DNA from: Octopus bimaculoides
Lineage: Eukaryota
Assembly (NCBI RefSeq): GCF_001194135.2
Contig: NC_068981.1
Span: forward strand, 187,027,109-187,089,381
Direction: 5' to 3'
Length of the DNA: 62,273 nucleotides
The position numbers were made by a program, and so were the translations under genes. Shown in pieces: positions 1,984-48,885 of the stretch. How positions within the stretch are numbered: position 1 is the stretch's first letter; the number at the start of each line of letters is the position of its first letter. The notes below the pieces were generated by a model. It did not search any database, was not told the origin of the DNA, and saw only the letters and a program-made list of their open reading frames with translations.

Positions 1984-4900
1984 CTAAGCAACAATTGGTC
2001 ACCTTTAGTTTCATGGAAACATTAACAAAAGAGACACCATATATTAACCAATCAAGTTCCTCGGTCACCCTGACTCCAGTTCCTACAGGATATTCGTGAA
2101 CAGTAACATTCTCGGTCACATAATTTCATTGGACAGAGGTTATGATAATCTCAAACCACCACACCCTTCATCATCAACATCCATCTTCCATGCGTGCATG
2201 AGTAGGATGGTTAACAGGAGCTGGCCAAGTAGAAAAACTACCCTAGGCTACTGTGCCTGTTTTGGCAGGGATTTTTCCAGCTGGATGCCCTTCTTAACAC
2301 CAGCAGAACCCTGAAACCATGTAACATGAAACAAATAATTCTAACCATGATAAATCTTGTAGTCTTGTGATGTCATCAATATCGTTAATTCCAGCATATT
2401 TCATCACAAGGTAAATAGAAATTCTTCATCATCATCATCATCATTTAATGTCTGTTTTCCCAGCTGGCATGGACTGGACAGTTTGGCAGGAGCTGGTAAG
2501 GCTCGGAGCCACACTAAGCATGCAGTACAGTTTGTAAAAGTGGTTGGTGTTAGGAAGGGCATCCAGCTGTAGAAATCATGCCAAAACAGACAACTGGAGC
2601 CTGGAGCAGCTCCCCAGCTTGCCAGCTCCTGTCAAACCGTCCAACCCATGCCAGCATAGGAAACAAACACTGAATGAAGATGACAATGATGATGATGAAA
2701 TGCTAATTTTATAGCATGTGCTGCATAAATTGCATAAGTTTTGTATGTGATACGAAATAAATGATCTTCATTTATGGAAACACAAACAACATTGATTTGG
2801 CTTTCCTACAATTAAAATAATTATATATTTCATCGGCACAGGCACGTGGGTGTGGCTAAAATGCTTGTTTTACAGTCACATGGCTTCAGGTTCAATTCAA
2901 CTGGACAAATGCCTTCCACTATAATCCCAGGTTGACCAATGCCTTATGAGCAAATCTGAATAACAAAAACTGTGTGGAAGCCTGTCATGTGTGTGTGTGT
3001 GTGGTTGTGTTTGGCCTCAAACCCCACCTTGACAACTAGCGTCAGTTTGTTCACATCCCCATTAAATTAGCAGTTCAGCAAAGGGGACTGATGGAATAAA
3101 TGTGTTAAAAAAAAAATGTACTGGAGTAAATTTGTTCAACTAAACCCTTCAAGCATGGCCGCAGTCCAATAACTGAAACTGGAGATAAAGAGAGACAAGA
3201 ATATTCTTACCTGACTTTCTGTTAGTGGCAACCAGTATATACACGGAACAGCTTTGGTTTTCCTAAATAAATCATCTAGTAATTTGGCAGGGGCTTCTTC
3301 TTCTATTACTTTCTTTTCTGCAAAACAATAAAACAAAAAAAATAAAATAACTACAGAAATCTATCTAGAGAATGTCATCTCAAACTTTTGGAAAACCAGG
3401 AAGACTGGGACACAGCAGTGAAAGCCAATCTCAAAATATCAAGGCTTATGAAGGAGATGATAGAAGAAGGAGATATGTGGCGCATTGCTGTACTCAAGAG
3501 GAGCCACCCCACCACAAGAGAACTGACAGTCTAAAACCACCTTGGTAATGCCAGTTCATAAAGGGCTCTGCCCTGTCAACTTTCACCTCCCACCCACATT
3601 TCGCTCCCTAACACCTAAAAAGCACTGGTGATGGTGACAGGGCCATGTAAAGAGCACTGGTGATGGGGCCACGGAAAGAGCACTGGTGATGGGGCCACGT
3701 AAAGAGCACTGGTGATGGTGCCACGTAAAGAACACTGGTGGTGGGGGCCACGTAAAAAGCAACTGGTGATGGTGACGGGGCCATGTAAAGAGCACTGGTG
3801 ATGGTGCCACGTAAAGAGCACTGGTGATGGTGCCATGTAAAGAGCACTGGTGATGGGGCCACGTAAAAAGCACTGGTGATGGGGCCACATAAAGAGCAAT
3901 GGTGATGGTTCCACATAAAGAGCAATGGTGATGGGGCCACGTAAAGAGCAATGGTGATAGTGTAAAAAGCACCCAGTACACACTGTAAAATGGCTGGCAG
4001 ATAAAGGGCATTCAGTTGTAGAAATGAAGCCAAAACAGACTATGAAACCTGGAGCAGCTCTTGGCCTTGCCAGCTCCTGTCTAACCCATACCAGCATGGA
4101 AAACAGACAATAAATGATGATGAAATATAGCCTGAAAAAATAAATCACTAATCACATGGGAACCAAACACCACACCTGTACATGTAGTGAATGGTTAAGA
4201 AGTTCGCTTTGCAATCACAAGCTCCTAGGTTCAATCTCACTCTATGGCATCTTGGGCAAATGACTTTTACTCTTGCCTCGAGTCAACCCAAGCCTTTTTG
4301 AGTGAAATTGGTAGGAAACCGTGTAGAAGCTTGTCAGAGGGATGCTTACTGCAATCCAAAGGCACAGTATTGTCACAATAGTGTCACACTACACAACTGT
4401 AGTGGAGGATTACTTTAATGGTAAACATGTCTGTGGAATACTCAACCACTTACATGCTAACTCAACAAACAGGTAATACAGTTGTTCAACCAAATGACCC
4501 AACTGATGGAGATCTTTTTATTAATACAGGAACAGAATACCTATTCACAAGAGACTCTAAAGCAAAACAACTGACATGAAGAATCCAGACGTCATTCCAG
4601 TATAAGGAGCTAAACTATGAAATGGCCTGCCATATATATTTCATTTTGGTCCATACTTCAAACCACAATGTCTAATGTTATTAAAAATATATTCTGAAAG
4701 TATAACTACAAAGGAAGACCTGTATATCTAACTGAAACCCTTATGACTCCTGGAGGTCCGTATAAAATTTTAGGGAGTCCATGCAAGAAAATAACAAATT
4801 GGGAGTCCACATAGTATTTGAGGGATCCAGACATATTTATTACAAGAAACAACTAGGTTTCTTTCTCTAATGCTTTACAACATGTTCCTGGCTGCTAAAA

Positions 4901-7900
4901 CATGTTTTCTCAGAGAGTGCTGTTGCTAACTTACACAAGTGAACATGTGAAAAACAAAATAAAACTTAAGACTTCTGAAAGAATTATCTGTAAAAGTATT
5001 ATTTAAACATCAAATGGCTATGGGGATTCACCAATGTAAAACTGGAATCCAAGGGATCCATAGATAAAAAATGGTTGAGAACCCCTGACTTAAGTATAAT
5101 TACAAGATGCAAAATGACTGAAAGATATCAGAAGCTCTGTGTGTGTGTAACTATAATATTAACCCTTTCATTACTGTATTTATTTTGAGATGCTCTGTGT
5201 TTCTTTTAATTACTTTTAATATAACAAAGAATTTAGTAAAATAACTTAGTTATCATTAAGCTAGTGTTAGGAACATAAATTGTGACTACGGTTTGGTGGA
5301 AGATTTTAATTCAAAACTTATGAAAACAAGACATTTATACTATAGGGCCAAAGTTGGTTTCAGCCAGGTTAGTAACGAAAGGGTTAAATCAGTTACCTTT
5401 CTTTTCTCTTTTTTCTCCACTTAGTGCCCGTTTTTTCCTTTCTCTGGACCTTGACCGAGACTGTGAACAAGACGCTGACCTCGACCGCCGTCTCATCTTA
5501 CCACGATCCCATTCTCTCACTTTTTTAATATCTTCTTTCTTCTTCATTTCTCGCACTGATTTCTCAGCCGATTTCACTGTTTTAACACTGACATCTTGCT
5601 GGATTTCTCGGATAATGTCCTGAGGGCCTTCCTCTTTGGAACGATAGTAACTCACCTGAAATGCAAGACAAGAAGTTAGAACTATGCATAACATATACAC
5701 AAGTAAATCATATCCCAATCAAAACTAATAAGATTCAATAAAATGCTTCAAATAATTATTTTAATTAACCCATTTGATACTTTTTAAATGGTTTAAATTT
5801 AAATCTTCCATCAGAATTTCATGTTAATCTATATTCCAAACAAATGCTAGCTTAATCCTTTAGCATTTAAATCGCCATATCCAGTTAAAATATTCTGCTC
5901 ATTTTATCTTAAACTGACCATATCTGGCCTATCACACTTACCCGAAAATATCGTTCTGCTTATGCCAGTGCCACATGACTGGCACCCATGCTGGTGGCAC
6001 ATAAGAAGCACCATTCGAGTGTGACTAATGCCAGTGCTACCCGACTGGCACCTGTTCCGATGGCATTTAAAAAGTACCATTCAAGTGTGGCCAATACCAG
6101 TGACACCTGACTGGCACCTGTGCTGGTGGCACGTAAAAAGTACCATTGAAGCATGGCCAATGCCAGTGCCGTCTGACTGGCACCCATGCCGATGGCACAT
6201 AAGAAGCACCATTCGAGTGTGACTAATGCCAGTTCTGCCTGACTGGCACCTGTGCCGGTGGTACATAAAAAGCACCATCCAAGCATGGTCAATGCCAGTG
6301 CTGCCTGACTGTCTGCCATGCCAGTGGCACGTAGAAAGCACCCACTAGACTCTCGGAGTGGTTGGCATTAGGAGGGACATCCAGCTATAGAAACATTGCC
6401 AGATCAGATTGGAGCCTGGGGCAGCCTCCTGGCTTGCCAGTCCTCTGTCAAACTGTCCAACCCATGCCAACATGGAAAGCAGACATTAAACGACGATGAT
6501 GATAATGATGATCACTGAAATCTCAGATCAATGCGAATAAATAAGCATTACGTTTGACAAAGAAATCTGAATGCTAAAGTAATGATAATGACAATGATAT
6601 TTTACAAAATTCTTCATTATTTTCAAAATTAATTGAAACAGAAAGGCATTACTCTTCAACAGAAATATGATAACAAAAGAATTTAAAACTACTTCTAAAA
6701 AGATTTTAAAAAACGTTGCAAAACTATCAAAATTCAGTTTACCTCATCATCTGTTGCATATTCTACTCGCAAAATTTTTGGATTAGAAGATGGCCATTTG
6801 GTTCCATGTAGAGCTTTTCTGGTTAGGATAGCTTGTTCTTCTGTTTCATACTAAATAAAGAAATAATTCAGAATATATTAGAAAAGAAATGAGAACATTT
6901 TTCTCGAGTCATTTTAGAAGTATGCTATTTATATTTAGTTAACATTTCCTAATTTTACAAGTAGATGTATATTTACTATTTGCAGGTAAAAATATAGCAT
7001 CTATTCAAAATAAAATTCATGATTTTACTTCATTTTTCAAATTTTAAAACATCAAACAACCTGAAAAGTCATTATAAATTATAAGACTAAAATAAGCTCA
7101 ATTTATTACAATATATGCAATAGTTTCTAATACAGGCACAAGGCCAGAAATTCGTCAGGAGTAGATCAATTTAACTGACCTTCATATGTGATTGGTACAT
7201 TATTTTATCAAATCCAAAAGATTAATGACAGATAAAAGTTCATCTTCACAGAATTTGAATTCAGAAGACAAAGAATCTTGACTATAAACCACAATTTGTT
7301 AAACACTAATAATTCTCAGTCTACTACCATATAATAATTTTGTTTTTTCTCTAATTTAATTCCAAGGCCAATTTCCAAAGGAGATAATTAGTTGATACTA
7401 AAACCTCAATACTTGACAGAAGTTTTATTTCCTTGACCCTGGAGGAATGAATGGCAATGTTGGCTTCATTCATGGGATTTGAACTGAAGGTCTTGTTTTG
7501 CAAGTTACTTGTTAACCACTGTTGCCAGTGTCACGTCAAAAAGCACCCTATACACTCTGTAAAATAGTTGACATTAGAAAGAGCATCCACCTGTAGAAAC
7601 CATGCTTAAGCAGATACTGGAGCCCAACAACATCGTCAGCTCACCATTGCCCCTATCAAACCATCCAACCATGCCAACATGAAAAACAGATGTTAAATGA
7701 TGATGATGGTGATTGGTAGGGGATCAGTCAATAAAATCGACCCCAGTACTTGACTGGTATATGTAAATAATAATAATAAAAAAACCTACCTTGGCAAAAC
7801 AATGGGATTTAATCTTGTCTATCCAGAAACCATTTTCCACAACTGCTCCAGTTCGTTTTAAAAGTTCCTTTAACTGACCAATTGTAAAAGGACGAACTAA

Positions 7901-10900
7901 ATTTCGGACATGCACTATCTTACTAACTGGATTATGAGCAGGTGATGGAGATCTCCGTGCAGCCATTGGTTCCTCGGGTTCAGTAATTGACAGCTGATGG
8001 CTGACCCTTCGAACAGTTAATGGGGACGTAAAAGTTTTGTTGGTCACTACCACAGCGGGGGCTTGTTGGTTAACAACTATTGGAGTGACAGGTTCTGAAA
8101 ACATACAAGTGTTAAGTTATTAGTACAGTGAGTCATGTTATGTGCAGTATTGTGTATTTAGTGCATACTACTAATATGTTGCAACATTATTCTACACCAG
8201 CAGTTTATAGAATGTGGCTTTGTTTATAGAATGACAGTTTAGAAACTTTGGCTTTGAATATTAAGAAATTCCTGTGTCTCAGCCTTTCCATAATGCAAAA
8301 ATAATTTATGTAAATTTTGCTATTTAAATATTAATGCAAGTTTACAGATGTTTCTAAACTAGATACAGAAGAAGAACTTCACTTAGTCTAACCCTTTCGT
8401 TACCAAACTGGCTGAAACCAACTCTGGCTCTATAGTATAAATGTCTTGTTTTCAGAAGTTTTGAATTAAAATCTTCCACCAAACCTTAGTCACAATATAT
8501 ATTCCTAACACTAGTTTAATGATAACTAAGATATTTTACTAAATTCTTTGTTACATTTAAAGTAATTGGAAGAAACACAGAGCATCTCAAAATAAATACA
8601 GTAACAAAAATGTTAAAGAACACAATACTCTTTGCACAACACAAATATTCAATAATGTTAAGACAAGAGTTTTAATAGCAAATAAGAATTATATAAGTCT
8701 TTGGTAAACAGTATAAATACTCAAACTGCAAATTTAGATTACAAACTTGTATTTATATTCAAGTATTTAACTTTTATTTTATTTATGAATAACTAATTTA
8801 ACCCTTCAACATTCAGATTACTGTCAAATGTAAGGATTATTTATCATTTTATTTTGTATTAAACATAGATTATCTTGTAGCTTTGAGTTTTTGAGGATGC
8901 GATTGTTAATTTTTAGAATAACATTGTAGAGTTAGTGCAAGAGGTTAGATCTAGCCAGTTGAAGCATGATACATGTAGATTATTTGGGTGGATACAACCA
9001 GTTTAAATGCTAAGGGGTTAATGGAAGTAAATAATAAACATCTGAAACCTTAGTCTACCTTAAAGGAGCACTAATCCAAAGAGAGGATATTCCCACTTAT
9101 TTTTTGCTAGTTTAAGTACAAGGTTAGTAATTTTTTGATGGGGGTGGTCCATCAACACCAGCAATAGACTGGTACTTTATTTTATCAACTCCAGAGAAAC
9201 AGAAGACAAATTTGACCCCAGCAGAATTTAAACTCAGAACATGAAGAATTGCTAATCCACTGCCGTAAGCACAGCTAATTAATAAAACTTGAATGTGGCA
9301 GAAATGTTAGCATGCTGGGCAAAATGCTTAGTGGTATTTTGTCTGCCGCTACATTCTGAGTTCAAATTCTGCCGAGGTTGACTTTGCCTTTCATCCTTTC
9401 AAGGTTGATAAATTAAGTAGCAGTTGCATACTTGGGTCAGTCTAATTGACTGGGACCCTCCCCAAAAATTTCGAGTTTTGTGCCTAGAGTAGAAAAGAAA
9501 ACTTGAATGTCTACTAAATATTTGCTTTAATATTACCTCTCTCAATTGGTGCAGCAGTCGCAGCAATGGGCACTGGTGCTGCAGCTGCAACTTCAGAAGA
9601 AACCTCCAAATCAGCATCAGTTAAGACTTCTCGTGCAGTAGTGACCAATTCAACTTCCTCCTCTTCCTCTTTCATCTAATCAACAACAAAAAAAGAAAAT
9701 CACTGAAGCTTGCACCAATTAAATTCCTGCATGTCAACATGCTAATGTAATACAATTAATCATGCTGGTACCACGTCAAAAGTACCGATGCTGGTACCAC
9801 ATAAAATGTATCCAGTACACTCTGTAAAGTAGCTGGCATCAGGAAAGGCAACTGACCAAAGAAATCATGCCAGAAAGGAGAATGGAACCTGGTGCAATCC
9901 CCAGCCTTACCAGCTCCTGTCATACAATCCAACTTATACCAGTATGGGAAACAGACATTAAATGATGATGATGCAGATCAGTTCTTGCAACTTCTTTCTA
10001 CTGGACTGTATGTCATATGAAATGTGGAGAATTCTGGAAAGTACCCCACCATTAAAAACAATTCAGTTCTCCTGTCTCAAGTGCACAAGCACAGAGCTGA
10101 GTATACACAGTTACTGAGCAATGATGGCCTAAACATTATTGTGAAAATTTTGCAAAAGACACAAAATACTTGCTGACCTCGTGGGTGCTGGTGCCTTGAT
10201 GGCCCTGCAGGTACTGGTTCCACATAAAAACCATCTGTGCTAGCGCCACATTAAAAGCACACATGCTGGCACCACATATAAGAGCACCTCAGAATACTCT
10301 ATGAAGTGGCTGGCATTAAGAAGGGCATCCAGCTGTAGAAACCATGCCAAAACAGACAACTGGAGCTTGGTGCAGCTCCCCAGCTCCTGTAAAACTGTCC
10401 AACCCCATGTCAGCATGGACATTAAATGATGAGGACATGATATATTAAACAACTAATATACAAAATAATACAATTGGTCCATAAAATAATACATACCTGT
10501 ACTGTTCTTCGGAACTTCACTTCCACTTTTTCTTCTTCGTGGTCAGAGAACGAACATTCATCGTGGCTGAGATCTAATATAGCCTCTTTTATAGAACTTG
10601 GTTTTATGTCAGGAATTAAACCCTAAAATAATCAATGTAAGTCAATATGATAAAATTCACAAAGATTTTTTTCTTTGCTCAATATTTAGCAAAACCATAG
10701 ATATTTAAGTTACCTTTAAGGAATCTGTAGAAATATCTATTGTCGTTGACTTGGTGGGTTTAGCACTGGTTCCCCATTTACGTTTACGTGGTACAGCAGA
10801 GGGAGCCGGTGCTGTAGCCTTCCCATCACATTTATCACTCGATTCTTCATTTTGCAACTTAACTACAACGCAAAATAAACAGAAAAATTAAAAACAACAG

Positions 10901-13900
10901 GAACAGAACCATTTAAAAAAAACATTTTTTAAAATTATTTTTTTATGAAAAATATAACTGTTGATATTTGTCATATCAAGAATATAGTTGGTGAGTTGAA
11001 GTAAGGTTATACTGAATGTGCAAACAACGTTGCACATAGATTCCTGTTTTACTTCACCATATTACAACCAAAAAGAGAAACAATGGTTAAATTTACTCAC
11101 GAGACAACTGTAGAGATGTACGCTGAGTGGTATCATTATCTTGGTTTTTCTGTCCCTCCTCCTGCTGAAAGACAACCAGCTGACATTTTTTACTCAGATT
11201 AAAAACAAAAAGTAAAATAAACTAACATAAGATAATGTCTCATGGTGAAACATTTTTGTGGCTCTTTCATCACTTTAATCCATCAGAATATAAAATATTC
11301 ATAAAAAAAAAAGAAAAAAGGAAATATTAATTGCTTAACTATCTGTCTACTCTTTATTTTCGTTGCTTCCAACCACTGGAATGTAGAACACATTCCCCAT
11401 CAAAATTATCTAATACCATCAATATTAGGAGCATGAAGTAAAACCTTTTATCTCAAGATAAGTAGTCATTAAATAAATAACGAATAGAAGAGCAATGTTT
11501 TTTGGGTTTTTTTTTCAAATAGGAATCATAAACAGGGTGTTCAAAAAGTCTCTCCACAGTAAGTATTTAATGGTTTTCGGGCAATTCTTGTACACTGATC
11601 CTTTACTTGCTCCCCAGAAAAAAAAAAGTCTGGCGGTGTTAAATCAGGTGATCTTAGTGGCCAAAGTCCCTTCGAAATAATCCGTTCACCGAAAAACTCT
11701 TGAAATAGTGCCATGGTGATGCGCACGATGGAAAAACTTCACTGCGGAGAGACTTTTTGAACACCCTGTACAAAGTATTAATCATGTAATTATAATCATT
11801 GTTTAACGTCCGCCTATAATAACCAAATATACTAAAAATATTGTTTTCTTTTTATCCAAATAAATTTAAACCAACACTGTATTTTCAAACTTCATGCTCA
11901 TCTCATTTTGTTTTTTATCAACTAAATAGCTCCTTGGCTCAGAAAGCAATATCTTAGTAGATATATATCTTAAGTGATATCTTAGTAGACGTACTGATCT
12001 AACACATGGTAAAGGTTATCAATACAGTCACAAAGTAGTGACAGCGTCAGTCAATACTTTCTATATCAAAAAGGCCTATACTGACTGATATCAATGTAGC
12101 TGCTCAAAAGATTCAAAGAATTACTGAGAACCGTAATTTTCAAAGTTAGAGGTTTTGGGGGTTTTCTTTTTCAGCTTCTCGGCTTAGCTGTAATTAATTT
12201 ACATTTAATGTAAAATTCTAAAAAGTCACTGAAGAAAACAATCGTATATAAAGCCATCTCAATGACTATTTCTATCATAATAATTTTATCTTTTTTTCCT
12301 TTCATATACAGTAATCTTAATTTATGAGATGTCTGGATACTTTTAAATTGCTTTAATAAAGGATGTTACTTTTTGGCATATTATTTTCATTAAAATATTA
12401 AATTAATAAAATCTTTAAAACTAGAGACAATATGTAATAAATTATGAAATCTAATTAACATAAACATTCCACTGTTAAATTAAAAGTGAAAGAGTAAAAG
12501 TACTAATTAGAACGTTATCACATTAAATATGCTTTAATAGTAATATATTTTAAGTTATTAGCTTCAAGATCTATACATTCAAAACAAACAAAGAAATTTT
12601 AAATAATAAACAAGCTAGATATTAAAAGATTTACACATATTAAAAGGTATACATAATTAGAAATGGCTAGGTTTTTAACTAATTTACATTTTTATGAAAA
12701 TACTAAAGTGAAGATATTTCTAAAATAAGAGAGCAAATGTTGAAGTTATTGCTGCCCAGTTTAGGCACTGCCAAAATACCAGCCTCAGTGAACGCTCTAA
12801 GCCTCCTCCTCCTCCTCCAGTAACATTGAACAAACAACCCAGCAGGAGAAGCATCATACATGTCATGCCATCTGACACAGGCAGGTGAAGTTGTCGCCGT
12901 CATCATCGTCACCATCATCAGCAGTATCATCACATCTTTGGGTATGACTCAAGGGCATGGGAAGTAAAAATATTTTTCTCATCAGTTGGTGCACGTTCTT
13001 CTAGTTTGATGTTCCGCATCTTCGATGAGTAAAGTTGCCAACCACCAGGGCTTAAGATTGTACACAACAACCAGAGATATCGATAATCTAGCTTCTTGAA
13101 AATGTTCGTAAAGAACTAAAGAAAGAAAGGTGTGTCGGTTTTTTTCTTTTTTTTTTTGTCTTTTGTTTTGTTTTTTAAATACGTTTTCAGAATACTGAGA
13201 CAGGAGATGCATTAATGCTTTTACAAACAGTTCTTTCTAAGAAAGAAGTACATCGTATAAAATTATGAGAATGTCACTGCTTAAATATATTTATCAATGA
13301 ATTCAACAAAATGGTTGTGAAAAAGTAATATTCTTCTGATAAACGAAGTCTTTAGAATAACAACAGAGGAACATAATAACTTAAAGAGTAGAACAACAAG
13401 AAGTTGAACACATTCAATGAGGATGGTGTAGCATGGTTGCATCAAACATTTCACTGCAACATAATAAGTATGGCTGATTCAAGCAGTCAGTCGAGTTGAT
13501 TCATTCAATTGAGAATAAGAACATTCACAGATTTCCTTGTGTTGGTTAAGTTGTGTACTTCAGTATTTCACCAGTCTCAATGAAACGAAATAATAACCAC
13601 AAATGACGTTGGTACTCTGGGAGAGCAGAAGATTGGTAATGTACCAATAACCAAAGAGCCTGAATTCTAGTAGCTTCCAAGAGATACGTTTGCAATACAC
13701 AGGTTTCCTTTCTTTTTCTTTTTTCTGTTTTTGGTAACCAAAAATCAACAAAATGCTGTTGAGTGTGGAGCCAGCATTCTGTTAACAGATCCAACTACTA
13801 CTGAAGAAAGAATGTCAATAATAATAACTAAATCAATCAATTAGTGATTGATTTAGAAAGTTCAATTAAATTATGATTGTGTGCAAATGTGAGATTGTTA

Positions 13901-16900
13901 TTTATGTTAGCATATTTTCCATGATGCATGTAGAAAATTCCAAATAACTTTTGAGGTTGTTGTTTTTTTGTATGTTTGCTTTTTTTTTTAAATGCTATTT
14001 ATGATCCAATTATGGTGGTGGCTTCTCACTCAAACAGTGAAAGTGTATGTGTTCATATATGAGATGTGTAGAGGTAGAATATAGTGACAACCTGAAATAT
14101 CTAGAACCAATCTCAAGAAACAACTTCAATTCTGGTTGTGTGGTTTAAATATCAGTAGTAGTAGTAGTAGTATGGAAATTGGTAAAATCCTTAGGTATTG
14201 CATAAATCCTTTGAATATTGTTCCAATGGTGATAAACATGGTAATTCTCTCACGAGAAGTTCTGGCAATATGCCTCTCTTTCAAAATGATTTCAAGTTTC
14301 AATGAAACGTAGAAAAGTTCAATAAAGAAAATGCCATGGTAACAATATTCAGCATTGAAGAGATTTTTCCATCTGGCAGAATGATGATATATCGATGACT
14401 GCAAAACAACACTCCTCCTTTTGGCAGCGATATTCTCTTGCTTCAGATGAATTTTCCCCACATCTTCCTTTTCAGGGTGTCATGAGTTAAGGCTGGAGAG
14501 CGCATATCAGGTGAGACCAATGGCTACAAGTGGCTGATGTTGACATCAGTGTTGGCGTTCGCCCTTCAGCAGCTCACAGATTTGCAATTCTCTATTGCAT
14601 TGAGGAGATAGTAAGGTGAAATTAAACACTGGGGAGGAACTGTGTCAAAAAAAAGCTAAGGACAATCAGCTCTTATCCTTGGCATCAAATATCTTAAAAT
14701 TTTTCCCAGACTCAAAACAAAACATACATTTCCTTTTACCAAAACTCAAGATTTGTAAAAACAAACACTAAATCAAGACAATACTAAATAAAATTAAATA
14801 AAAAAAAAGCTTTTAACATTCACAATATTTAGAAAGCTACTTAATTAAAACTACTGAATTTCCGATATTATATTACACTATGTAAATTCTATTCTCACTG
14901 TTAATCTAATCAACTTATATTAAATTCTATGAAATTGTTCTATTTAAAAATTTAGTTTTTATAAATGGCTACAGGAATGCAAAAGAAATATTTAATATTT
15001 AACTAACCAGTTTTTACAACATACATTTGAGTCAGTAAAAAAAAAAAAAACCAAATAAAAATATTTTTAAAGTATATATATATTACAAAACTATCAAATT
15101 TATATTGTTGTAGACAATTTTTTTGGTGTAATTAAAACTAGAATTTACAGAGTTGGTAACTTAGTCTAATTATTTCAAAGAGTAAAAGAATCAAGCAGAA
15201 GTATTAATATCTCTCTGAAATGACTCAATAAAGTTTATTCAACAAAACTGGCTGCAAGACTTATTTCAACACCATTTTTATAAGTAATAAAAGTAATTTC
15301 ATTTATCACTAATGGTTTATTAATTGCTATTTCTAACAATCAAAATATTTTACAAATCATTAAGCATATAAATCTTTATTCATACAGCCACTTATTTGTA
15401 TAACATGATCAGAGATCTATACATCATTTACTGATCAAGGTTAAGCTAACATATGAAATAAAGTCATCTACCCAACAGCAGATTTGAACTCAAAACTCTT
15501 AGCAAGTTGTTCAATACTTTATCCAGTTGACCTGTTCGCTTCTACATCATATTCAATTCACATAATAAAATACTGAATACAGGCTTCCCTTACATTACAG
15601 AAGTGTTGCACTCGTGAAATTCTTGCCAAAACCTGGAGTTTCATAACATGAAACCTTGACTACACCTTGTTACATAAAAGTCAGTTTTATGTCAAACTCC
15701 ATGCTAGAGAGCAATATTTTTTCGACATTTTCTGGACTGCAATATTTCTTCCATAGTACTGAAGATGCTCATTTGTAATCAGAAGTAGCTGATTTCAACA
15801 ACTACAGTAACACAAGATGATTTATCTTCAGCAAAAGTTAAAAAATTTTTAACAAAAAAACTTTTCTAATTATTACGTTTCAATGTGAATTAGACTAAAC
15901 CGTAATACATTTTGCTTATCATTTCAGATACCAGAGGAAGTATGTAATCAGCTTTCACTCAGAAACACTGACTACATTCGTTTTCAAAACTTTAATCTTT
16001 TATCATGTTATAATTATAATTACAAATTTTACCACAAATATATATTTAATATATAGTTATAATTAGCATTTTAACGCATATTTATATTTAATATTTAGTT
16101 TAGAAAGATATTATTGAAATTATTTTTTACAATTAGAAAGTAATTTGGGATTCACTAAGTTCAAATCTAATTCTTTGATTTAAAAAAAAACAAACTATTA
16201 GCAAATAAATATTACAAGCAACATAAAACACACATACATACATCCACACTCAAATATACAAATATTCTCAAATAGGAAATGGGAGATAAACAAAAGCATT
16301 TAAAATAAAATTTAAAATGTTTGAAAACTGTAAATTTGTAAATTTTTATGTAAATAATATCTAGGAAACAAAAAAAAAATAAATAAAATCATTATTAAAC
16401 ACAATCTTGCAGAATATTTGTTTCAAACAGCCTAATATCAACAATTTCATTAAATAAAAAGTTCAAGTGTATTTCTCATCAATCAGATGAGCAGATTTCC
16501 AATGTTTCAGAGAATAATAACTTAGAATTAAAATTAAAACAATTGTTTTAAAGAAATAGTTAAGATCTTTCTGTGTACAATATTTGTTTAATTAAATCTT
16601 CAGGCAAAATTTTGAATTTAAATTTACATAGCAATGCATATTCAACATCAACGAGTAAAAAATGTATCACTTTTAATATTTAATAAAAGTTTTTTTTAAA
16701 AGGATGCAAAGTATTTTCACTTTGATCATCTTGGAAAAATTTCTCTTCTGTTTTACTTTTCCATTTTGTGACTAATTCCCCGTGATCATGAGATCTACTT
16801 TAACGTAAAGAGGAACTAAAACGTGATGGCCAGTTAATGTCAGGATAGATTCAGGTCTTAACGAAAAAAAAAAAAAAAAATGGTTTCTTTCCAAGTTCTT

Positions 16901-19900
16901 TCTTTCTTACAATACATGAGAAAATAACATGCATCACACTTTGACAATAAAGTGAAATAGTGCAAACAGCAATCAAACAAGTCAAAATTTGAGCTGGGAA
17001 TGTATACAAAGCTAAAGGACTAACTAGAAAATATGATGGGCTTTTTTGTCTAATTGTAATGGACATTAATCAAAACAGTATCCTCTCCCAAAGAATATAG
17101 ACATATAAATTTAAGAATACATTAATAATTGACAACTTTACCTCGTTATTTTCATTTGCTGCCACTTCCTCTTTCGGTTGCTGGGGTTCACTCTCTACAT
17201 CACTAAAACACAAATTGAGTAAATTGACATCAGCACAGAAAGTCACAAGCAGTCAACACAACCAGTCTAGATTATAGTACAAAGATTCTGCTCAGCAGTA
17301 GTGTCACCTCGTGAGATATCAATTCCCAATCAATTAGATATCAATCATTGTAACACATTCTATAAACAAAATTCCTCTAAATTTAAAAATTGATCTTAAA
17401 ACATCAGCTGAAATTGTCAGCCAGAAAATAAAGGTAACAATCAAAGAATACTAATGACTTACTAAAACTAAATCAGTGTTGAGAATATATACACAGGCTA
17501 ATACTTCACACTACAGCTTTTGAATCTTACACATTACATTAATGACACAAAATCCAGCAGATATTAGTTTACAACAGATTTTTTTTTTTTTTTTTTTTTT
17601 TGTCCATCATATGAATTTTTTTAATTGAAAGAAAAGGGAAAAAAAATACAAAACTATCCAGGATGTGGCCAAGTGTTTTCACAACGAACCACAGCCACAA
17701 AACTAACCTATCAGCAGCGGCAGGGGAGATAACTTCATCTCGTTTATTTTTTTTCATTTCACAACTCGGAACTGCTACATTAGTAACAATTTCCTCAGTT
17801 TCATTTACTTCTTTTTTATCCTGAAATGGAGTAAAATGTCATCACATTAAATGGAATATTACTATCACTTCTATCATTAATATTATCATTAGAAGTATTA
17901 TAATTATTGATATAGATTTTATAACTTTAGTCAGTTCAATGCTTTAAATCTAAATTCTGTCACCAAACAATAGCAATCCTTGTTTGATCAACTCCAGGTT
18001 TACTGTCTGTTTTTTTTTTTTTTGCATGCTAGTATGGGTTAGATGAATACTCATTATTGGGACAATGTTTCACAGCCAAGCACCCTTCCTATTAATAACC
18101 AGTACCTTGTTTCCAAGCAAAGGATCTTTTTCTTATTCCACTTCTTATCAATATGAGATTGAGGGTGGTTTTTGATTAACAATTCCATACAAAGGAATGA
18201 TAAATGAACATTCTCACACACACACTATGGGCTTCCACAAAGTTTCTGTCTACCAATTCCACTCACAAGGCATTGAAAACCCATGAAGAAACTTGCCCAA
18301 GGTGTCACACAGTCAAATAGAACTTGAAACTGTGGCTATAAAAAAAAAAAAGTAACATTGTTATTCCAGTGGCACTCCATCAGTTACAAGCATTTCAGTT
18401 GATTCGATGAACTGAACAGCCTACTCATGAAATTAATGTGCAGAAGGGTTAAATCAATATTTAACTGGGAAAGAAAAGGCCAAAAGATTCTATATCTGAA
18501 CTTTGGATTAATAAAATCCACTGTAAGACAAAATGGGAAGCTATCTAAAACAAGAAAAATGGCAATAATAATTGCAACAGTAAAAATTCATTTCTTACAT
18601 TGACATAGGGGGGGGGTGAAAGACTACAGTTGAGTGATTTGACACAAAACATGAAAATCTTTATTTTATTGAGGAAAATATGTCAATTTTTGTATGATCT
18701 AAATCAAAAAATCATCCTAATATTTCTGCCAAGACACCATCACATTGGTAGGGTGTCAGGTTACTTGTGAGTCCTCTTATAAATGCTACTAATAACATGG
18801 AATCTAGTACAACTTGTTGCATGCTCAGGTCGTCAGCAACTAAACTGGCACTCCCATTAAGCTTGCCTGGTGAGGCGAGTTGCTAGAGACCCACCAGGAT
18901 TAAAAACAAGACCTATCAAAAGGACAAATGAACCCAGTGTAGGTTCAACAAGTACCTAGCAATAGCAAGAGCCCTCAGAAATTCCAGGTTGGTGTCCAGT
19001 GTGCTGGAAGGCCACTGGGAGTAAAGCACCCCTTAGCGTTTGTTAAAGCATGCTGCTTCAAACCCAGGCTATGTCTGCTCTGATAAATGGCGGTAACTTG
19101 GTCAGTGAATCTTCTGCAACAGTCGACAAGATGACAGATCGTGTGTGTGTGTGAGTATACATGTGATCAGGAGCCACGTGTGAACTTGAATTCTCACTGA
19201 AACACCAAACATGCATTGATCAGAGCTGGCTCAACACCCCTGGGTGAATGCCGCCACCAGTACAAGTAAGTATTTAGTTAAGGCAGGGAACTATATAACC
19301 ATCTAAGCCAACCAGTATGGAGTAGAAGTCTTAAAAATTATAGTGTTTATACTAGTTATTTTATACACCATTACTCACTGTTAAATTGAGGTTATTATTT
19401 TAAAGTTTAAGAATAACAAGAGAACATTTACTGATGGGAAAGGGGCCACAATACTGTAAGGTCTCAAATTTATTGTAAAAGTCCTAGTCAACACAAATAT
19501 TACTATGAAGATATTCATATAAAAGAAATTTAGGGGTATTCCTATTTCTAGATTACCTGGTATTTTAAATTAATTACTAAACTAATTATACACACAATTT
19601 TAAATACCTGTTCCTCTGAAGACTTTGTGGGTGTCTTTTTCTTTGCAGGTGAGCTAGAAACGGAGCTGGATCTGGAATGGGATGGGGATCGGGATCGAGA
19701 TCTAGACCGTGAAGGAGACCGTGATGAAGCCGAGTTTGACCATGATCGGGAGCGGGATGCTGAACGGGATCTCGAAGATGCAGATCTTGATCGGGCTCGA
19801 GCTTCTGAAGACTTCATGTCAGGTTCCTTCCGTGAACTACTCGAAGACGACCGAGATCTAGACCGAGAGGAATGAGAACGAGATCTTCGGTTGCTTGAAT

Positions 19901-21863
19901 GAGACGACACAGACCTGCAAAGAAAAAGATTTAAAAGGAGCTTAATTATCAGTCATACAGAAAATCAAAATGTGTTTAGTATACACTATACAATAAAATA
20001 AAAACCCAAACGAAGCTAATCAATTTTAGACCATTTTGCAAAAAAAAATTTTAAAAAAACACTTTACATTATTTTCACATTTTTAATTAGTAGTATTAAA
20101 AATAAAAATCACTTGCTCAAACTAGTTAGTAAAACAAACATCCTAGAAAAATATTTGTATAAATAGTGAAATATTCTAATCTTCAAACTCAGATTTTGCT
20201 CCCAAAAAATTATATCAGTTCTTACTTAATCTGTGTAATTCTTGAAAGTATGAACAACTAAAGAGAACTTCCCTTGAGTAAACTTTTTTGAAAAAATGTT
20301 GACCACAACATCTATGAACCTGAAATATAAAACCCTTTTGGAATGTTTTTTCAAGTGGGCATGTGCGAACCACATATAACCCAGTTTTTAGAAAAGGTAC
20401 ACCATGTACCTGCTGTCATAGAAGGCAAATGAAAGTGTTAGTATCTGGAAGGGTCTCTGGTTGTAAAAAGACACTGCCCCAGAAAGATCCATCTAACCCA
20501 TGTCAGAATGGGGAAGTAAAAACAATGATTATATAATGTCAGAAATTCAACAGAGCCATTTATAAGGGCAATGAGATTATTTTATGAACTTAATTCTCGA
20601 AAGTTTATCTTCTACTATTGGAATATTTTCAGCTTCCAAATTCTAATGGCAGAATATAGCAAGCATGAAGATGCTAGATGTTATTTGGTGGTAATATAAT
20701 CCTGAAAACTGGTGGCTTCACTAACTAGAAGCTAAATCTACTGTAATATTCAATATTACAGGAGATAGTTTACTGCAATTAGCGCTTCATCTTCTTTTGA
20801 ACTGAACCACACCAACTGAAAATACTATGACAGACTTTATTTTCTGACAACTTTGCCTTTTGTAGCTTGTTTGCAACTTTCCACAAAACTACAAAGCTTT
20901 TGTTTTCTCTAACCAGGAAATAAATTTCTAACAAAGTACCAATGGAAGCTGTAATTCTCACACCATTTCTCCATTAGTATTAGTAAACATTATTGAAACA
21001 GCTGGTCTGGAGAACAAGCTACAAACTTAGTCATCTGGAGCCCATCTTCTATTTTATAACACTCGCTAAAGAAAGACTTCAGTCCAGCACTTGAAGTTAA
21101 TGAACTACAAACTGGTTATGCAGTATTTCAACCAATTACAATCATGAACAGTTTTTCTCCATGACACGTCTATATGGTAATTAAGATTGGTGGAATGCAA
21201 TGCCAAGCTAAGGGCTCTCAACTCTTTAATGGAGCACACAGATGCCATGATGACAATTTGGACTTGGTGGAACCCATCCCTCTCCAGGTATGATCACAAC
21301 TGGTTTCTTCCAAAAAGAGAATAATCAACTCCAGTACTTGTCTAGTACTTTATTTTATCAACCCTGAAAAGACAAAAGGCAAAGCTGACCTTGGTAGGAT
21401 TTGAACTCACGAGCACAGAGAGCTGGAGAAATTACCACAGAGCATTCTATCCAATGCTCTAACAACTCTGCTAGTTGGCCATCTTAAAGACAATAACAGT
21501 GATAGAATACATGCCTTCAGCCAGTAAGCAGCAATCTCACTATCACTGCCTATTTAGGCTACGTAACACTACATAATATATGCTGTCAACTAGTAAGCTG
21601 ACAAGTATATATTATGTATTGTTGTGTAATCTTAACAGGCAGGGATATTGTAGTATTCCTACTCTGCAGTATCCCTATCAATCAAGACTACATTGCAATG
21701 ACATAAACAAACTAAGAAACTTCCTGAAATATGGCAAAAGTATATAAATAAAGCTTAATCATGACTTTTAACTATAAGAGACCACTGTAAGTGGTAATAG
21801 GCAGGGATAAATACATCTTCCATCAAATGCCAAAAAATGTTAGTACTAAATAGTTTTTTGTAA

Positions 21864-26087: not shown

Positions 26088-26184
26088 NNNNNNNNNNNNN
26101 NNNNNNNNNNNNNNNNNNNNNNNNNNNNNNNNNNNNNNNNNNNNNNNNNNNNNNNNNNNNTATATATATATATACACACACACA

Positions 26185-26246
<62 letters not shown>

Positions 26247-28917
26247 TTACATTACATACGTACATACATATCAAATTGAGAAATTCCATGTAACATCATT
26301 CCACAGCATTTCATATTAGGAGTGTCTTCTCTACCTGAAGACTGTTTGCAGGAAGAAACTCAGTAAAATGTACATTACATTGAATGTCTTAAACTGATAT
26401 ATACATAAATATAAACACACATACACTTTTTTTACCATTTAAAGCTACTACATGCCGGTTAGTGTTAATGTATGCCATCATAAGCAAGTGTGAGTGTGTG
26501 TTTATGTTATATTTTAAATACATGACCAATCTAAACATAAGAACCTACAAGACTGAAATAATTCCAAATCCAACATAAACCATCCACCTATAATTGCTCA
26601 AAGGTGACAAAGGCTTTAAGCAAGTCACAGTATGATTAGAAAGGACATTATCATAAAGTACAGAAAAATACACAAAATGTTCAAAATTTGGTATTTTGGC
26701 TAACATACACTATGTTCAGAGATTTGGAGTAATCCTCAATTCAATAGGTAGGATGTAACATGACTGGGCTATTTGATGAAACACAGCATGCCATCGATAC
26801 AATACAATTCAAACTACAAAACAAAATATTTAGAACTTAACTTGCAACATTTAATACTTGATAGAAATAAACTGTGCAAAGAAACTCAACAAAAAGAAAA
26901 ATATTTACAGAATTCCTCAGAGCTACAAAATTATCAAGATACACAAACCTAAGGAATACATCAATTCTATGACAGAAATAAACGATATAGTAAAATAAAA
27001 TATAGAGAATTCAAATCCCAAAACATAAATAGTTCAAGACTGAAACAATTAGAGGATAGACCAAGGTAGACAACTCTGTACAATCTAATCACAATAGTAA
27101 CTTTTCTCCTTTCCCTACACAAGAAAACTTAGTTCTCAAGCCAGAATTAGAACGGTTAAATTTATGAAAATTTCCAACAATCATTGTCAACTAAATATTA
27201 CCATATTTAATATTGAAGATATTGATTCTGAATAGAGCAAGTATTTATTGAAAACAATGGCACAACAGGAAATAATCTACCTAATGTATTAAACCACCTA
27301 CACAAGATTTAAAATGGAAGCTATTAATGAATTTAGTTCAAACCATATATTAAACTATCTAAACTTATTAAGAAGACAAAACAAAATATAAAAGGTGAAA
27401 TATATATTTTACAAACATAGAGTCCAATAATAACTTGGGGAGAAATATACCCTGCAGTTTCAAATATTTCAATAGATTAATTCAATTATATCATAACTTT
27501 TATTAAGAAAACTAAATTTTATAAAAAGGAAAAATATGTGAAGACAAATTTAAAGGATTTTTGATGCTAAATTAAAAGGTGCTTTTTAGTGTCAATATTA
27601 AATTAGCCCAATTTCTAAGACACAAGGACTGTTTAACTACTCTAATGTGAATATCACATTTAAAGATAATTTAAAAAGCGAAAAGAATATACATAACAAC
27701 ATGGAAAATAGAAGTAACTTATGAAAACTATATGCATTGAACTATGACAGGCTGAAACATTGAAATTACAAATTAAAATTAAAAAGGGAGAAAAAGAAAA
27801 GAATTTCCTAAGCAACACTTACTTTAGTACAGCCACTTGTTATACTGGCTCCAAGATCAGTTCGGTCCAAATCGCCAACAAAGTGTCAGGGAATTGACAG
27901 TGACTGTGTGTACACAAAGCCAATCTTTTGACCAATAGCACTAATTAGTTGCTAGCAGTCACAGCAAGTGTCATTTGGTTTTGCTTTCACTTTTTTTTTT
28001 TTGCTTTCTTTTGGTTTTTTTTTTTTTTTNNNNNNNNNNTTTTTTTTTTTTTTTCTCTTTTAACATAAAAATAACTGTTGAATTCTAGAGTTTAAGCTTG
28101 TGGGTATATAGTATTCAATATAAAATATCATAGAAAAACCAACTCAAATTTAGTACAAGTATATATGAAAGATCACAGAACATGGAATTGCCTATATTTC
28201 ACTAATACTGACCAACTAAGTTGCAGAAATAATTTCAGCATAATTAGCCTTAATTAATAAATGGTAGCTAACGCCTTACTTACAATCAAAACTATTGTTA
28301 GTAAACGAATGACAGTAAAAATCACAAAAGTCTACCTTAGCAAATTGAAAAAGATGTTTGTGTGTCCATGTATGTTACGTAGAAAAGACAAAAGATATCT
28401 GGTGTACTCAATAAACATTTAAATTCACAATTCTATGAACATCAAATTTTATTTCTAGAAACATCATAATCATTTTCAGCAACCATTTTTTTTTTTTTTT
28501 TCATTCACACATTCTCAAAACTACAAATTCATTTCCTTTTATATCTCAATCTCTCTTTATTTGTATTTCATCTCTCAGAAATGGGGGGATGGGGGTTAAT
28601 ATTTAATCTTACATTACAAATAAATATCTCCATGTGGGTTTCATCAATGGTTCATTTGGTGTGTGGCAAGATATTTGAAACAAGTTTATTCATGTTTATT
28701 CATTTTCAACAGTTCACTCACCAAACAGAGCTACAAATAGCTCTTGTTTTATCAGCGGTTCTCAACCGGGATCCACAAGATTTTGTTGTTAAAATTTATG
28801 TGCAATAAATTGCTTATATTTCTACAATACACAAAATATTAAAAAAATTTTTTTTTTATACAACTCTAAATATTTAATTATAAAAATTTATTTATATATA
28901 TATATGTATATATATAT

Positions 28918-30459: not shown

Positions 30460-33400
30460 NNNNNNNNNNNNNNNNNNNNNNNNNNNNNNNNNNNNNNNNN
30501 NNNNNNNNNACACACATACACACACAAATAATGTAGTTAAAAAAAAAAAATCTACTTTTACATACATACACAACTACAAGAATGGCATTTGAAAGTGAAC
30601 TGTGAAATGGTGGCATGTTGAAAAATAAAATCTCCACATGTTAGTGAAATTTAAAAAAAAAAAAAATACTAAACTACATTTGCCCTCATTTTAAAACTTT
30701 TTCATAATTCAGGAAAAAGGTTACAAGATAACTAAGAAAAAACTTAGTACCGTTTCATATTATTAATAAATAAATAAAAATAAATAAATAAAAAGTTACT
30801 GAAGGCATAAAATTTACCTTCAATATTACATAGAATGGAAGGTTTTGATCATGCAAGCTGAACACAGAACTTAACCTTAAACAACGAAGTGATTTTCACA
30901 TTCTTTTCTACACAAATGCAAAAAAGCTTAAGTTTATTAATGATATAGCACTGAATAATAATGATAAATGAAAAAATATATGGTTTTTTACCAGCTAATT
31001 GAATAACCCATCCCTGATTTGGCTGTGATAGCATTTTGAAGTTTAGAAAAAAAAAATCCCCAAAAAAAAGCACTGGTAAAGAACTCTACAGTGTATGACA
31101 AAAGTAGTTAAAAATGATGTGAAAAGACAGACGATCTAGTGAAAATGATTGAATTTGAACAATGGATGGTGAGGTGAGGGTAAATATCAACACCCATATT
31201 AACAGAAAATTACAACAAATGAATGAGTGGATAATAATCTACCAAGATGCTTGTAATTGTTAATTTAGGTTATTGTGTTCTATCTAGAATAGATATCCAG
31301 TTTGTCAGGAGACATGCCTGACACTCACATATACTAGTCTGAGAGAGAGAGAAAAAAACTTCCATGTAAATGGCTGTTCATTATTTGGAATTTTTAAGTT
31401 GGGGGATATGAAAAGTGTAAACACTATACAGAGAAACTTTAGGGGGATGTATATTAAAAAAAAAACAACTTTTAACTTAAAATCTCAAGTTCTCTTTTTT
31501 TCTGATTTTTTCAAGATACAATTTGACAGCTTTGTTCCCAAATCATTATCTTATTTATATAAAGGTTTAAAAAAGAAACTACTTGTTTAAAATGCTTTAA
31601 TTTCATTGAAAATAAAATGCTACATAGAACTGACATGTTTTGTGAAAAGGCTCATTGTAAAAAGAGGAACAAATCACACTAAGTGAATTAATAAGGAAAT
31701 TGTTATAAACTGATAGAAGTGTGTTCAACAGTAAATAATGCTGTTTTTTTTTTCTTCTTTAAATGCAGTTTTCATTATAAAATTACAACAGGTCATAAAA
31801 GAAGCATGCATACAATGTCAATGAGTAACAATTGAACTCATCTCACATAACAAAAAAAAATATTAATACATTTGCTGGGGAAGAGGAGGAATTATAAATT
31901 ATTTCATCTAATTATTAGTGAATGTTAGACAAAGCAAAGTTATTCTAATTTGGGACAATTACTTCTTTAATGAAATTAAAAAGATTTTCAGAAAAAAAAA
32001 AAATTCTTTTCGTTTTGTATAAAAAGTCAAAAGGAACAATTAAAATATTGAAATTAAGATTCAACAAAATATAGCCAAAAATTTCCATTGAAAATCATTT
32101 TAACATTAATATATGAAAGAAGAACAGAGATTAACAAAATCAACTCGTTAGAGAGTGGTGTGTTATTTACTACAGGCAAATAATTACATTACAATCTTTT
32201 TTTAATTTTTCAAGTGAACCAAATATAATTAATTTGTTTGTTACTTAAAATTGTTTGTTAACAGAAGTGTTATGTTGCCTCCATCATATAAATATAAACA
32301 GTCATTATGTATGTACACACACAGTGTATGTATAAGCACAGCTAGACTAGAAAAGTAAAGTTCGACAAAGAAGAATTTGTTCAAAATAAAGAAAAAAATT
32401 GCTTTGACACCAATTACCTCCATAAAATACAAAGTAATATTTTTAATGCTATTATTACTAAAAGTGAATTTATTCTATGTACCACAAGTGATTGTAGATC
32501 AATAGTATTGAGTACAATTCAATACAAAGAGAGAAAAGGCACAAGATAAATCCCATCGAAATGGAAAAGGGATTTTTATTATTAACAAGTTAAAATTGAA
32601 AATCTTACATTATATATTTTGTTACTGCTCATTTTGTAAACATTAAAATTGAAACAGCAACCCAATGAGTTATTTAACCATCAGATCAATTGATAGGAAT
32701 AACTATTTAATCCAGTTAATTAAGACAAATTAAGCACTAAAATGTTCATAAATTAAATTAGCTAAGATAATGACTAAAATATATACTATATGTCTTAATG
32801 AGAAACAACTTTAAAATTTTTTAAATTATAAAACTAGTAATTTTAATGGCATTTTAACAGCTGGTTAATTAATGTAGGAACAATACTATTTAAAAATCTC
32901 AATATTTGGCTTTCTTCCCTTCCCCCCACCCAATTTGTTTATTCTTTTAAAAATTAAAATGATAAATATATAAACACAGCATCTAATTTGAAGTGACTGT
33001 ATTTACATCTTAGAATTCGCTAAACTATATTTGGTTGTCAATAAGACAATCTCCCATAATTGTTTATCACTCATACTTTCCAGCTTTCAAGATTTACTGG
33101 TTAAATAACTGGGTTACTTTACCAGTGTTCCCTATATATGTGATGTGTGTGTGTGTGTGTGTATGTGTGTGTGTGTGTGTGTACAGGTATAGGTGTGTAG
33201 CCAAATGGTTAGTATCGATGTCATCATCATAAAGATGACAGTTCAACTACTAGACCAGGCGGCGTATTGTGTCCTTGAGCAAGGCACTTCATTTCACACT
33301 GCTCCAGTTTAAATCAGCTGAAAGTATCAGCCAAATACTGGTGCAACCCTCTCTCTCCCCTTCCAGTTATCACATCCTCCATGTTTTGCTGGATCAAAAG

Positions 33401-48400: not shown

Positions 48401-48885
48401 CAGACATTTATCTTTCGAGTTAACAGCAATAACTTAATGACAAATACAAAATTAAAAATACAATTAACACAAACTCTGTATTATCTGACATATTAAGAAG
48501 GAACGTTCAGATGGTCTGGATCAAGTAAGAGTTTGTTTAATCACTTTCTAAAGGTATAATAAATCTAATTTTTCAGCTTTATTAGATCGAAGAAAAAGGG
48601 GGAAAAATGCATCCGGTTTTGTTTTTTTTAAGAATGAAATTTATGAAATGCAAAAAATTATATATATATATAATATATAACGTACTGTTAATTGGGGATA
48701 GAATTGCGTCCATTCGATNNNNNNNNNNNNNNNNNNNNNNNNNNNNNNNNNNNNNNNNNNNNNNNNNNNNNNNNNNNNNNNNNNNNNNNNNNNNNNNNNN
48801 NNNNNNNNNNNNNNNNNNNNNNNNNNNNNNNNNNNNNNNNNNNNNNNNNNNNNNNNNNNNNNNNNNNNNNNNNNNNNNNNNNNNN

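Follow-up and report, generated by a model that had tools for sequence, protein, structure and literature searches.

Possible repeat-driven back-splicing at the octopus Acinus locus

Base-pairing repeats in flanking introns promote the back-splicing that gives rise to circular RNAs (circRNAs), as established for ZKSCAN1 (PMC4201285) and for fly laccase2, where the repeats are copies of DNAREP1_DM (PMC4617980). A stretch of 62,273 nucleotides from Octopus bimaculoides (contig NC_068981.1, positions 187,027,109 to 187,089,381 of the forward strand; hereafter the window) contains two copies of a MITE (miniature inverted-repeat transposable element) that lie in opposite orientation on either side of three exons, in a gene identified by its protein matches as an Acinus (ACIN1) homolog. 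An earlier note on this DNA described the arrangement as the classic layout for back-splicing, a description that agrees with the mechanism established for the two genes named above.

In laccase2, the inverted DNAREP1_DM repeats are needed for circle formation, and inverted repeats of this family also drive the PlexA circle (Kramer et al. 2015, PMC4617980). These loci share with Acinus the presence of inverted, transposon-derived and lineage-specific repeats near the splice sites of the circularizing exon or exons. The Acinus repeats are 92% complementary over 228 nt and reside in introns of 1.4 and 2.1 kb, whereas those of laccase2 match at 75% over 106 nt within introns longer than 9 kb and drive one of the most abundant fly circRNAs (PMC4617980). 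Three exons are bracketed at Acinus as against one at laccase2, and the laccase2 circle has been observed while that of Acinus is predicted. Long repeats can operate co-transcriptionally, and the pairing that they form is broken by ADAR (PMC4617980).

Human ZKSCAN1, HIPK3 and EPHB4 (Liang & Wilusz 2014, PMC4201285) resemble the octopus locus in that a circle may span more than one exon (exons 2-3 in ZKSCAN1) and in that the repeats occupy short stretches of the flanking introns. Their repeats, however, are inverted Alu short interspersed elements (SINEs) whose function has been validated by experiment, whereas the Acinus pair consists of a DNA-transposon MITE recognized from sequence. [quoted passage not shown] Given these effects of hairpin strength, wobbles and repeat segments, the Acinus layout is insufficient proof of a circle.

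MITE-type elements have been linked to circRNAs in the newt Pleurodeles waltl, where nMITE pairs are enriched in the flanking introns (PMC11872487). Both cases involve such elements on opposite strands in the introns around back-splice junctions; the newt elements are hAT-derived and are associated statistically, across the whole genome, with circRNAs that have been observed, whereas Acinus represents a TTAA-flanked, piggyBac-type element at one predicted locus. In general, circRNAs favour loci with recent transposable element insertions, and the repeat dimers bear no sign of selection (PMC8516420). In mouse brain, a gene of the same family as the host, Acin1, yields a detectable, low-count circRNA, mmu_circ_0005278 (PMC5153657); the flanking repeats of the two genes are unrelated, so that any likeness would be convergent. 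For Octopus vulgaris, 296 confident circRNAs have been reported from 18 tissues, at low levels for which the authors invoke ADAR (PMC9699675 and its supplement). By analogy, an Acinus circle, if real, would join the class formed by laccase2, ZKSCAN1 and the newt nMITEs, with a TTAA-type MITE and a splicing-factor host.

The inverted MITE pair

Copy A1 (5159-5387, plus strand) and copy A2 (8388-8616, minus strand) each have a body of 221 nt, at 5163-5383 and 8392-8612, respectively. TTAA is present at 5159-5162, 5384-5387 and 8613-8616, while the remaining flank, at 8388-8391, reads CTAA. Including a third full copy, A3, the tetranucleotide is intact at five of six flanks (TTAA/TTAA in A1 and A3, TTAA/CTAA in A2). 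Alignment of the three copies gives an element whose 221-bp body, bordered by TTAA on both sides, begins with CCCTTT(C/T)(A/G)TTAC and ends with GTAACGAAAGGG. Its terminal inverted repeats measure about 13 bp (CCCTTTC...GAAAGGG) and close the self-fold, although one terminus of A2 has decayed from CCC to CAT. The body is AT-rich, and neither A1 nor A2 contains an open reading frame of at least 60 amino acids or a significant match to a protein homolog.

The inverted match between A1 and A2 scores 331 bits (blastn, E=2.5e-93), A1 and the reverse complement of A2 being 92% identical. The two arms (5159-5386 and 8389-8616) are 92% complementary over 228 nt and are separated by a spacer of 3002 nt. 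This was the sole pair returned by a search of 2.5-10.5 kb for inverted repeats of at least 40 nt, and it ranks first among all inverted pairs of the window in an all-against-all inverted self-blast; the runner-up between different sites in the first 22 kb, which hold the gene body, reaches 72-78 bits and consists of SINE fragments. A1 lies in the intron downstream of the last bracketed exon (exon C), its TTAA occupying intron positions +10 to +13 and its body starting at +14. A2 lies in the intron upstream of the first bracketed exon (exon A), its body ending 297 nt ahead of the acceptor. The earlier note had placed two inverted piggyBac MITE copies, about 92% identical over 221 nt, 13 nt past the donor at 5397 and about 300 nt before the acceptor at 8094; the bodies agree to the base, and the spacing holds on both sides.

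The window contains three full copies and two fragments of this element. Because the full copies are only 86-92% alike, they are to be regarded as diverged insertions rather than as an assembly duplication, and A1 and A2 are, on the evidence of their sequences, independent insertions of a TTAA-targeting (piggyBac-type) MITE family of about 221 bp. The piggyBac label is drawn from the TTAA flanks and the CCC/GGG termini only; no piggyBac transposase was found within the window. When metagenome contigs were scanned for exact matches to the invariant core of the element, none was found. Whole-window Rfam and tRNA scans were likewise empty, and the SINE-like repeats described below received no tRNA call from ARAGORN; the MITEs were accordingly rejected as known structured-RNA genes. 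A hairpin-type MITE was also rejected: single copies fold only via termini of about 17 bp (-48 and -45.5 kcal/mol), so that self-folding is a weak competitor of the duplex between copies.

The host gene and the bracketed exons

All exons of the gene lie on the minus strand. The upstream exon (9537-9675, 139 nt) ends in phase 1 and is followed by exon A (7790-8094, 305 nt), which is entered in phase 1, is bounded by ttttcag/AAC and AAG/gtaggt, and encodes a linker together with the N-terminal half of the RRM. Exon B (6743-6850, 108 nt, phase 0 to 0) supplies the C-terminal half, and exon C (5397-5655, 259 nt) completes the RRM and adds a linker rich in lysine, arginine and serine before ending in phase 1 at the donor AAG/gtaactga. 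The downstream exon (3211-3317, 107 nt) carries the RSB core. The intervening introns measure 1442, 939, 1087 and 2079 nt along the gene, the first and the last being the pair that flanks the bracketed exons, and AG/GT sites are canonical throughout. Exons A, B and C therefore sum to 305+108+259 = 672 nt and run from phase 1 to phase 1, in agreement with the sizes, sum and phases of the earlier note.

The identity of the RRM is best seen in structure-based comparison, in which the human Acinus RRM (PDB 6g6s, chain 6g6s_A) is matched at E=1e-36 over query residues 55-143, a range to which all three exons contribute; the Pfam RRM_1 model gives a weak match below its cut-off (E=9e-4, 19.5 bits vs 20.7 bits). 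Pfam RSB_motif (PF16294) is recognized at E=1.4e-21, with 77 bits against a cut-off of 27.1 bits, and the linker of exon C corresponds to the N-terminal part of this model. For the exon at 3317-3211, the match is to the RSB peptide of Drosophila Acinus in the structure of the ASAP core (4a8x_B, E=2e-9). Both parts of the earlier domain assignment, namely an RRM inside the bracket and an RSB motif outside it, are borne out by these matches.

Searched against protein databases, the RRM-RSB region recovered Acinus homologs that were all distant, with 46-68% identity and each at most 453 amino acids long, and that carry the name 'apoptotic chromatin condensation inducer'; an exact look-up of the exon A open reading frame was empty. 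On these protein matches, the host is a minus-strand Acinus homolog. A search for the SAP domain (tblastn with two SAP queries) gave nothing above noise in the window, and the corresponding exon may lie outside it or be split by an intron. Further upstream, an open frame of 134 codons at 19551-19952 (minus strand) is extremely abundant in Arg-Ser dipeptides and has no Pfam hit; judging from its composition, it is plausibly an RS-domain exon of Acinus-L.

Predicted duplex in the precursor

When the A1 and A2 arms are taken in the sense of the pre-mRNA, RNAcofold predicts a hybrid of -320 kcal/mol with 219 intermolecular base pairs, as compared with -48 and -45.5 kcal/mol for the single arms and -84 +/- 4 kcal/mol for a shuffled partner. 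The duplex comprises 210 Watson-Crick and 7 GU pairs alongside 11 mismatches; its unbroken helices reach 41 bp, and it contains no A-run of 5 or more. Modelling thus shows the arms to be complementary enough for an intramolecular duplex of about 220 bp. In the global minimum free energy fold of a 3.6-kb precursor segment, 217 bp of the A2:A1 pairing are kept, the acceptor AG of exon A and the donor core of exon C are unpaired, and most of the 5' splice site is free. Pairing across the bracketed exons (331 bits) far exceeds the best pairing within a flanking intron (41 bits, no MITE being involved). Once formed, the duplex would place exons A, B and C in a loop, so that the donor of exon C (13 nt away from the stem) would come to lie near the exon A acceptor (297 nt away). 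On these folding predictions, the structural premise of the repeat-driven back-splicing model is sound.

Predicted circle and skipped isoform

The predicted back-splice junction, GAAAAGAAAG/AACCTGTCAC, is read AAA G/AA CCT in frame, and the predicted sequence of this junction is AGTGGAGAAAAAAGAGAAAAGAAAG/AACCTGTCACTCCAATAGTTGTTAA. The 672-nt circle would consist of 224 codons, with three in-frame ATGs (codons 42, 173 and 190) and, as the earlier note had it, no stop in the coding frame: none occurs over two laps. This openness is automatic when the lengths of coding exons read in frame add up to a multiple of three, for which the prior is about 1 in 3, and it carries no independent signal. The linear counterpart, in which skipping of all three exons would join the donor of the upstream exon at 9537 to 3317, also keeps the frame, as translation of the predicted junction (U/R, GCGACTGCTGCACCAATTGAGAGAG/AAAAGAAAGTAATAGAAGAAGAAGC) confirms.

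Competing repeats and the upstream region

The strongest potential competitor for A2 is copy A3 (42491-42721, plus strand), which has the orientation of A1, is 88% identical to A1 and is 86% complementary to A2. A3 and A2 form the second-best inverted pair of the window (229 nt, 86%, 261 bits) at a distance of 33.9 kb. A search with the open reading frame of an exon near 48 kb led to one related ENA contig, ERZ21867824:ctg122618l (403 kb, a distant relative), with which the minus-strand blocks 47733-48147 and 39150-39300 are colinear (positions 10025-10355 and 15811-15959 of the contig stretch used). Nucleotide identity is 76-84%, and the first block shows 62% amino acid identity. Their conservation and colinearity mark these blocks as real minus-strand exons, probably low-complexity or RS-rich ones that lie upstream in the same gene or in a neighbour on that strand; a Pfam scan of the candidate upstream exons gave no hit. 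Because A3 sits between them, it is probably located in an upstream intron.

The introns of the related contig cannot be aligned with the window, and neither the MITE family of A1-A3 (family A), nor family B (see below), nor the SINE family was found in 20 kb of this contig, a stretch that stops about 30 kb before the RRM exons would be reached. The copies have diverged from one another, and on this comparison the insertions appear restricted to one lineage, with nothing to suggest conservation.

Within the intron between exons B and C, a degenerate family A-like fragment (6580-6679, minus strand) is oriented like A2 and shows about 71-79% identity over 95-99 nt; weak pairing of this fragment with A1, bracketing exon C only, is possible. 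A second MITE family, B, is represented in the intron upstream of exon A by an intact TTAA element of about 220 bp (8798-9021, plus strand; TTAACCC...GGGGTTAA), and in the B-C intron by a copy on the minus strand (5853-6578) interrupted by about 550 nt of SINE-like sequence that includes a 66-nt tandem array. The earlier note regarded these two copies as a second inverted pair. Their opposite orientation stands, but the claimed strength does not: complementarity is limited to two parts, of about 42 nt (83%) and about 108 nt (68%), and the pair misses E=0.01 in the inverted self-blast. Moreover, it would bracket exons A and B alone (413 nt, out of frame). Being too diverged and interrupted, family B was rejected as a second driver of circularization. 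Another family-B copy (43911-44131, 76% identical to 8798-9021) lies 1.2 kb from A3, echoing the proximity of A2 and family B, a few hundred bases apart, at 8.4-9.0 kb; the adjacency of the two families may reflect common TTAA-rich targets or local hopping.

SINE-like copies at 2537-2700, 4004-4123, 6357-6512, 7561-7706, 9826-9971 and 10304-10416 are all antisense to the gene, and copies in the opposite orientation occur just downstream, at 2186-2302 and 2422-2500. This amounts to a strong bias in the orientation of retroposons within the introns. As the six share one orientation, they add no inverted pairs within 2.5-10.5 kb and leave the MITE pair without nearby competitors. Tandem arrays within SINE-like elements were observed at 3632-3958 (26-nt unit, 12.3 copies, 86% matches) and 5962-6342 (66-nt unit, 5.8 copies). 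Both units contain GGCAC(G/A)TAAA(A/G)AGCAC, and the 66-nt unit has short self-complementary GCCAGT...ACTGGC segments.

Other features of the window

An open reading frame fragment at 53561-53767 (minus strand) matches PF05699, the C-terminal dimerisation domain of the hAT family, at E=1.3e-4 (22.1 bits; cut-off 21.4 bits) and is, on this match, a decayed hAT transposase remnant. The open frame at 11544-11738 (minus strand), which has no Pfam hit at E<=1, is presumably akin to the C-terminus of a Tc1/mariner transposase. Local palindromes of about 100-114 nt are present in intronic or flanking sequence at 407-506 (86% self-complementary) and 21538-21650 (75%).

Six runs of N, at 26088-26160, 28030-28039, 30460-30509, 48719-48885, 60713-60722 and 61078-61315, mark the window as part of a draft assembly. 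Several of these gaps are bordered by (TA/CA)n or 'IYIYIY'-type microsatellites. The region from 3 to 10 kb is free of gaps.

Interpretation and alternatives

The reading favoured here, with a probability of roughly 0.6 as judged from the sequence, is that the MITEs are passive insertions: linear Acinus mRNA would dominate, the arms would be hyper-edited, and the 672-nt circle would be of low abundance at most and non-adaptive. The inverted-MITE architecture is real but ordinary, being a frequent by-product of transposon insertion. A1 and A2 would simply have inserted, in opposite orientations, into the introns on the two sides of the RRM-coding exons, with full-length linear mRNA as the chief product; linear splicing is expected to dominate, given five strong-looking splice sites and short introns. 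As A1 is transcribed about 3 kb after A2, the upstream intron could be excised, together with A2, before its partner exists. Long, near-perfect double-stranded RNA is a textbook ADAR substrate, and the duplex, whenever it formed, would be expected to undergo A-to-I hyper-editing of both intronic arms, which would be the likeliest trace of the pair. An exonic circRNA of 672 nt would be at most a low-abundance by-product of young transposon insertions, and its detection at a low level is plausible, though less likely than not. By analogy with the 296 circRNAs of O. vulgaris (PMC9699675), a coleoid cephalopod source, suggested within the sequence by its AT-rich, SINE-dense make-up, would lower the prior for a circle further. 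An mRNA that lacks the RRM through skipping, and a translated circle, are conceivable on paper but unsupported.

Several considerations weigh against this favoured reading. The yields of linear, circular and edited products are deduced rather than counted, and the circle could exceed the abundance assumed for it. The layout is unusually favourable, with one dominant inverted pair and no strong competitor within an intron, and A1 and A2 are far more complementary than the laccase2 repeats. Long repeats can act co-transcriptionally (PMC4617980). A circRNA from mouse Acin1 is, moreover, detectable (PMC5153657).

In the chief alternative, the core claim of the earlier note, back-splicing from the 5397 donor to the 8094 acceptor would be driven by the MITE pair at an appreciable level and would yield a readily detectable 672-nt circRNA. 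Complementary repeats lie in both flanking introns near canonical sites, pairing across the bracketed exons far exceeds that within introns, and the duplex survives global folding while leaving the splice sites open. [quoted passage not shown] Against these points stand the short flanking introns and strong sites, which favour fast linear splicing, the inhibitory potential of very stable hairpins and GU wobbles (PMC4201285), of which there are 7 here, and, for a cephalopod, the expected antagonism of ADAR and the modest octopus count cited above (PMC9699675). Most exon sets flanked by inverted repeats yield no abundant circles, which also counts against an appreciable one at Acinus; on balance, such a circle is considered unlikely, though a serious contender.

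A functional extension of this alternative, in which the circle would be translated as a rolling RRM reading frame, or the exons skipped to give a regulated, RRM-less Acinus that binds RNPS1-SAP18, must be regarded as very improbable. It could draw on the 224 stop-free codons with three in-frame ATGs and on a skip junction that keeps both the frame and the RSB core matched by 4a8x_B. The in-frame sum, however, is no evidence of translation given its prior, every described Acinus isoform retains the RRM (PMC5441173), skipping of exon C would also delete the N-terminal half of the Pfam RSB_motif match, and the MITEs are diverged and lineage-restricted. Pairing of A2 mainly with A3, which would loop out, in place of the RRM exons, those further upstream (about 39 kb to 9.5 kb) and so bring a different exon set into any circle or editing, is improbable as well. 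A3 has the appropriate orientation, forms the second-best pair, is probably intronic on the same transcribed strand and is transcribed ahead of A2, whereas A1 follows it; but the separation is 33.9 kb vs 3.0 kb and the complementarity 86% vs 92%, the intron holding A3 may already have been removed by splicing well before A2 is transcribed, and the exons at 39-48 kb, which have no SAP domain and no Pfam hits, belong to the Acinus unit only putatively. As to an assembly error or chance match, the six N gaps of a draft assembly would be its main argument, but 3-10 kb is without a gap, the arms differ at 18 of 228 positions with a match at E=2.5e-93, and a third diverged copy has TTAA flanks of its own. 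This explanation, whose probability is practically negligible, was rejected because the copies are diverged and a third one exists.

Implications

As it stands, the result provides a correct structural annotation and a prediction that is testable though unremarkable, and introduces no new principle. A highly speculative extension, to be given hardly any credence, is that in a coleoid cephalopod with high ADAR activity the MITE duplex could serve as an editing-sensitive switch, the unedited form leading to the circle and an RRM-less, RSB-only Acinus and the edited form to the full-length protein. If this were true, RRM-less Acinus could titrate RNPS1-SAP18, and ADAR activity would be coupled to the composition of the ASAP complex. 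If the circle exists, it would be a further case of young transposon pairs making species-specific circRNAs, and an unusually clean one, with a single dominant duplex of 228 nt, short introns and three in-frame exons in the gene of a splicing regulator. The locus would then offer a natural minigene in which ADAR editing and co-transcriptional splicing kinetics could be set against repeat-driven back-splicing.

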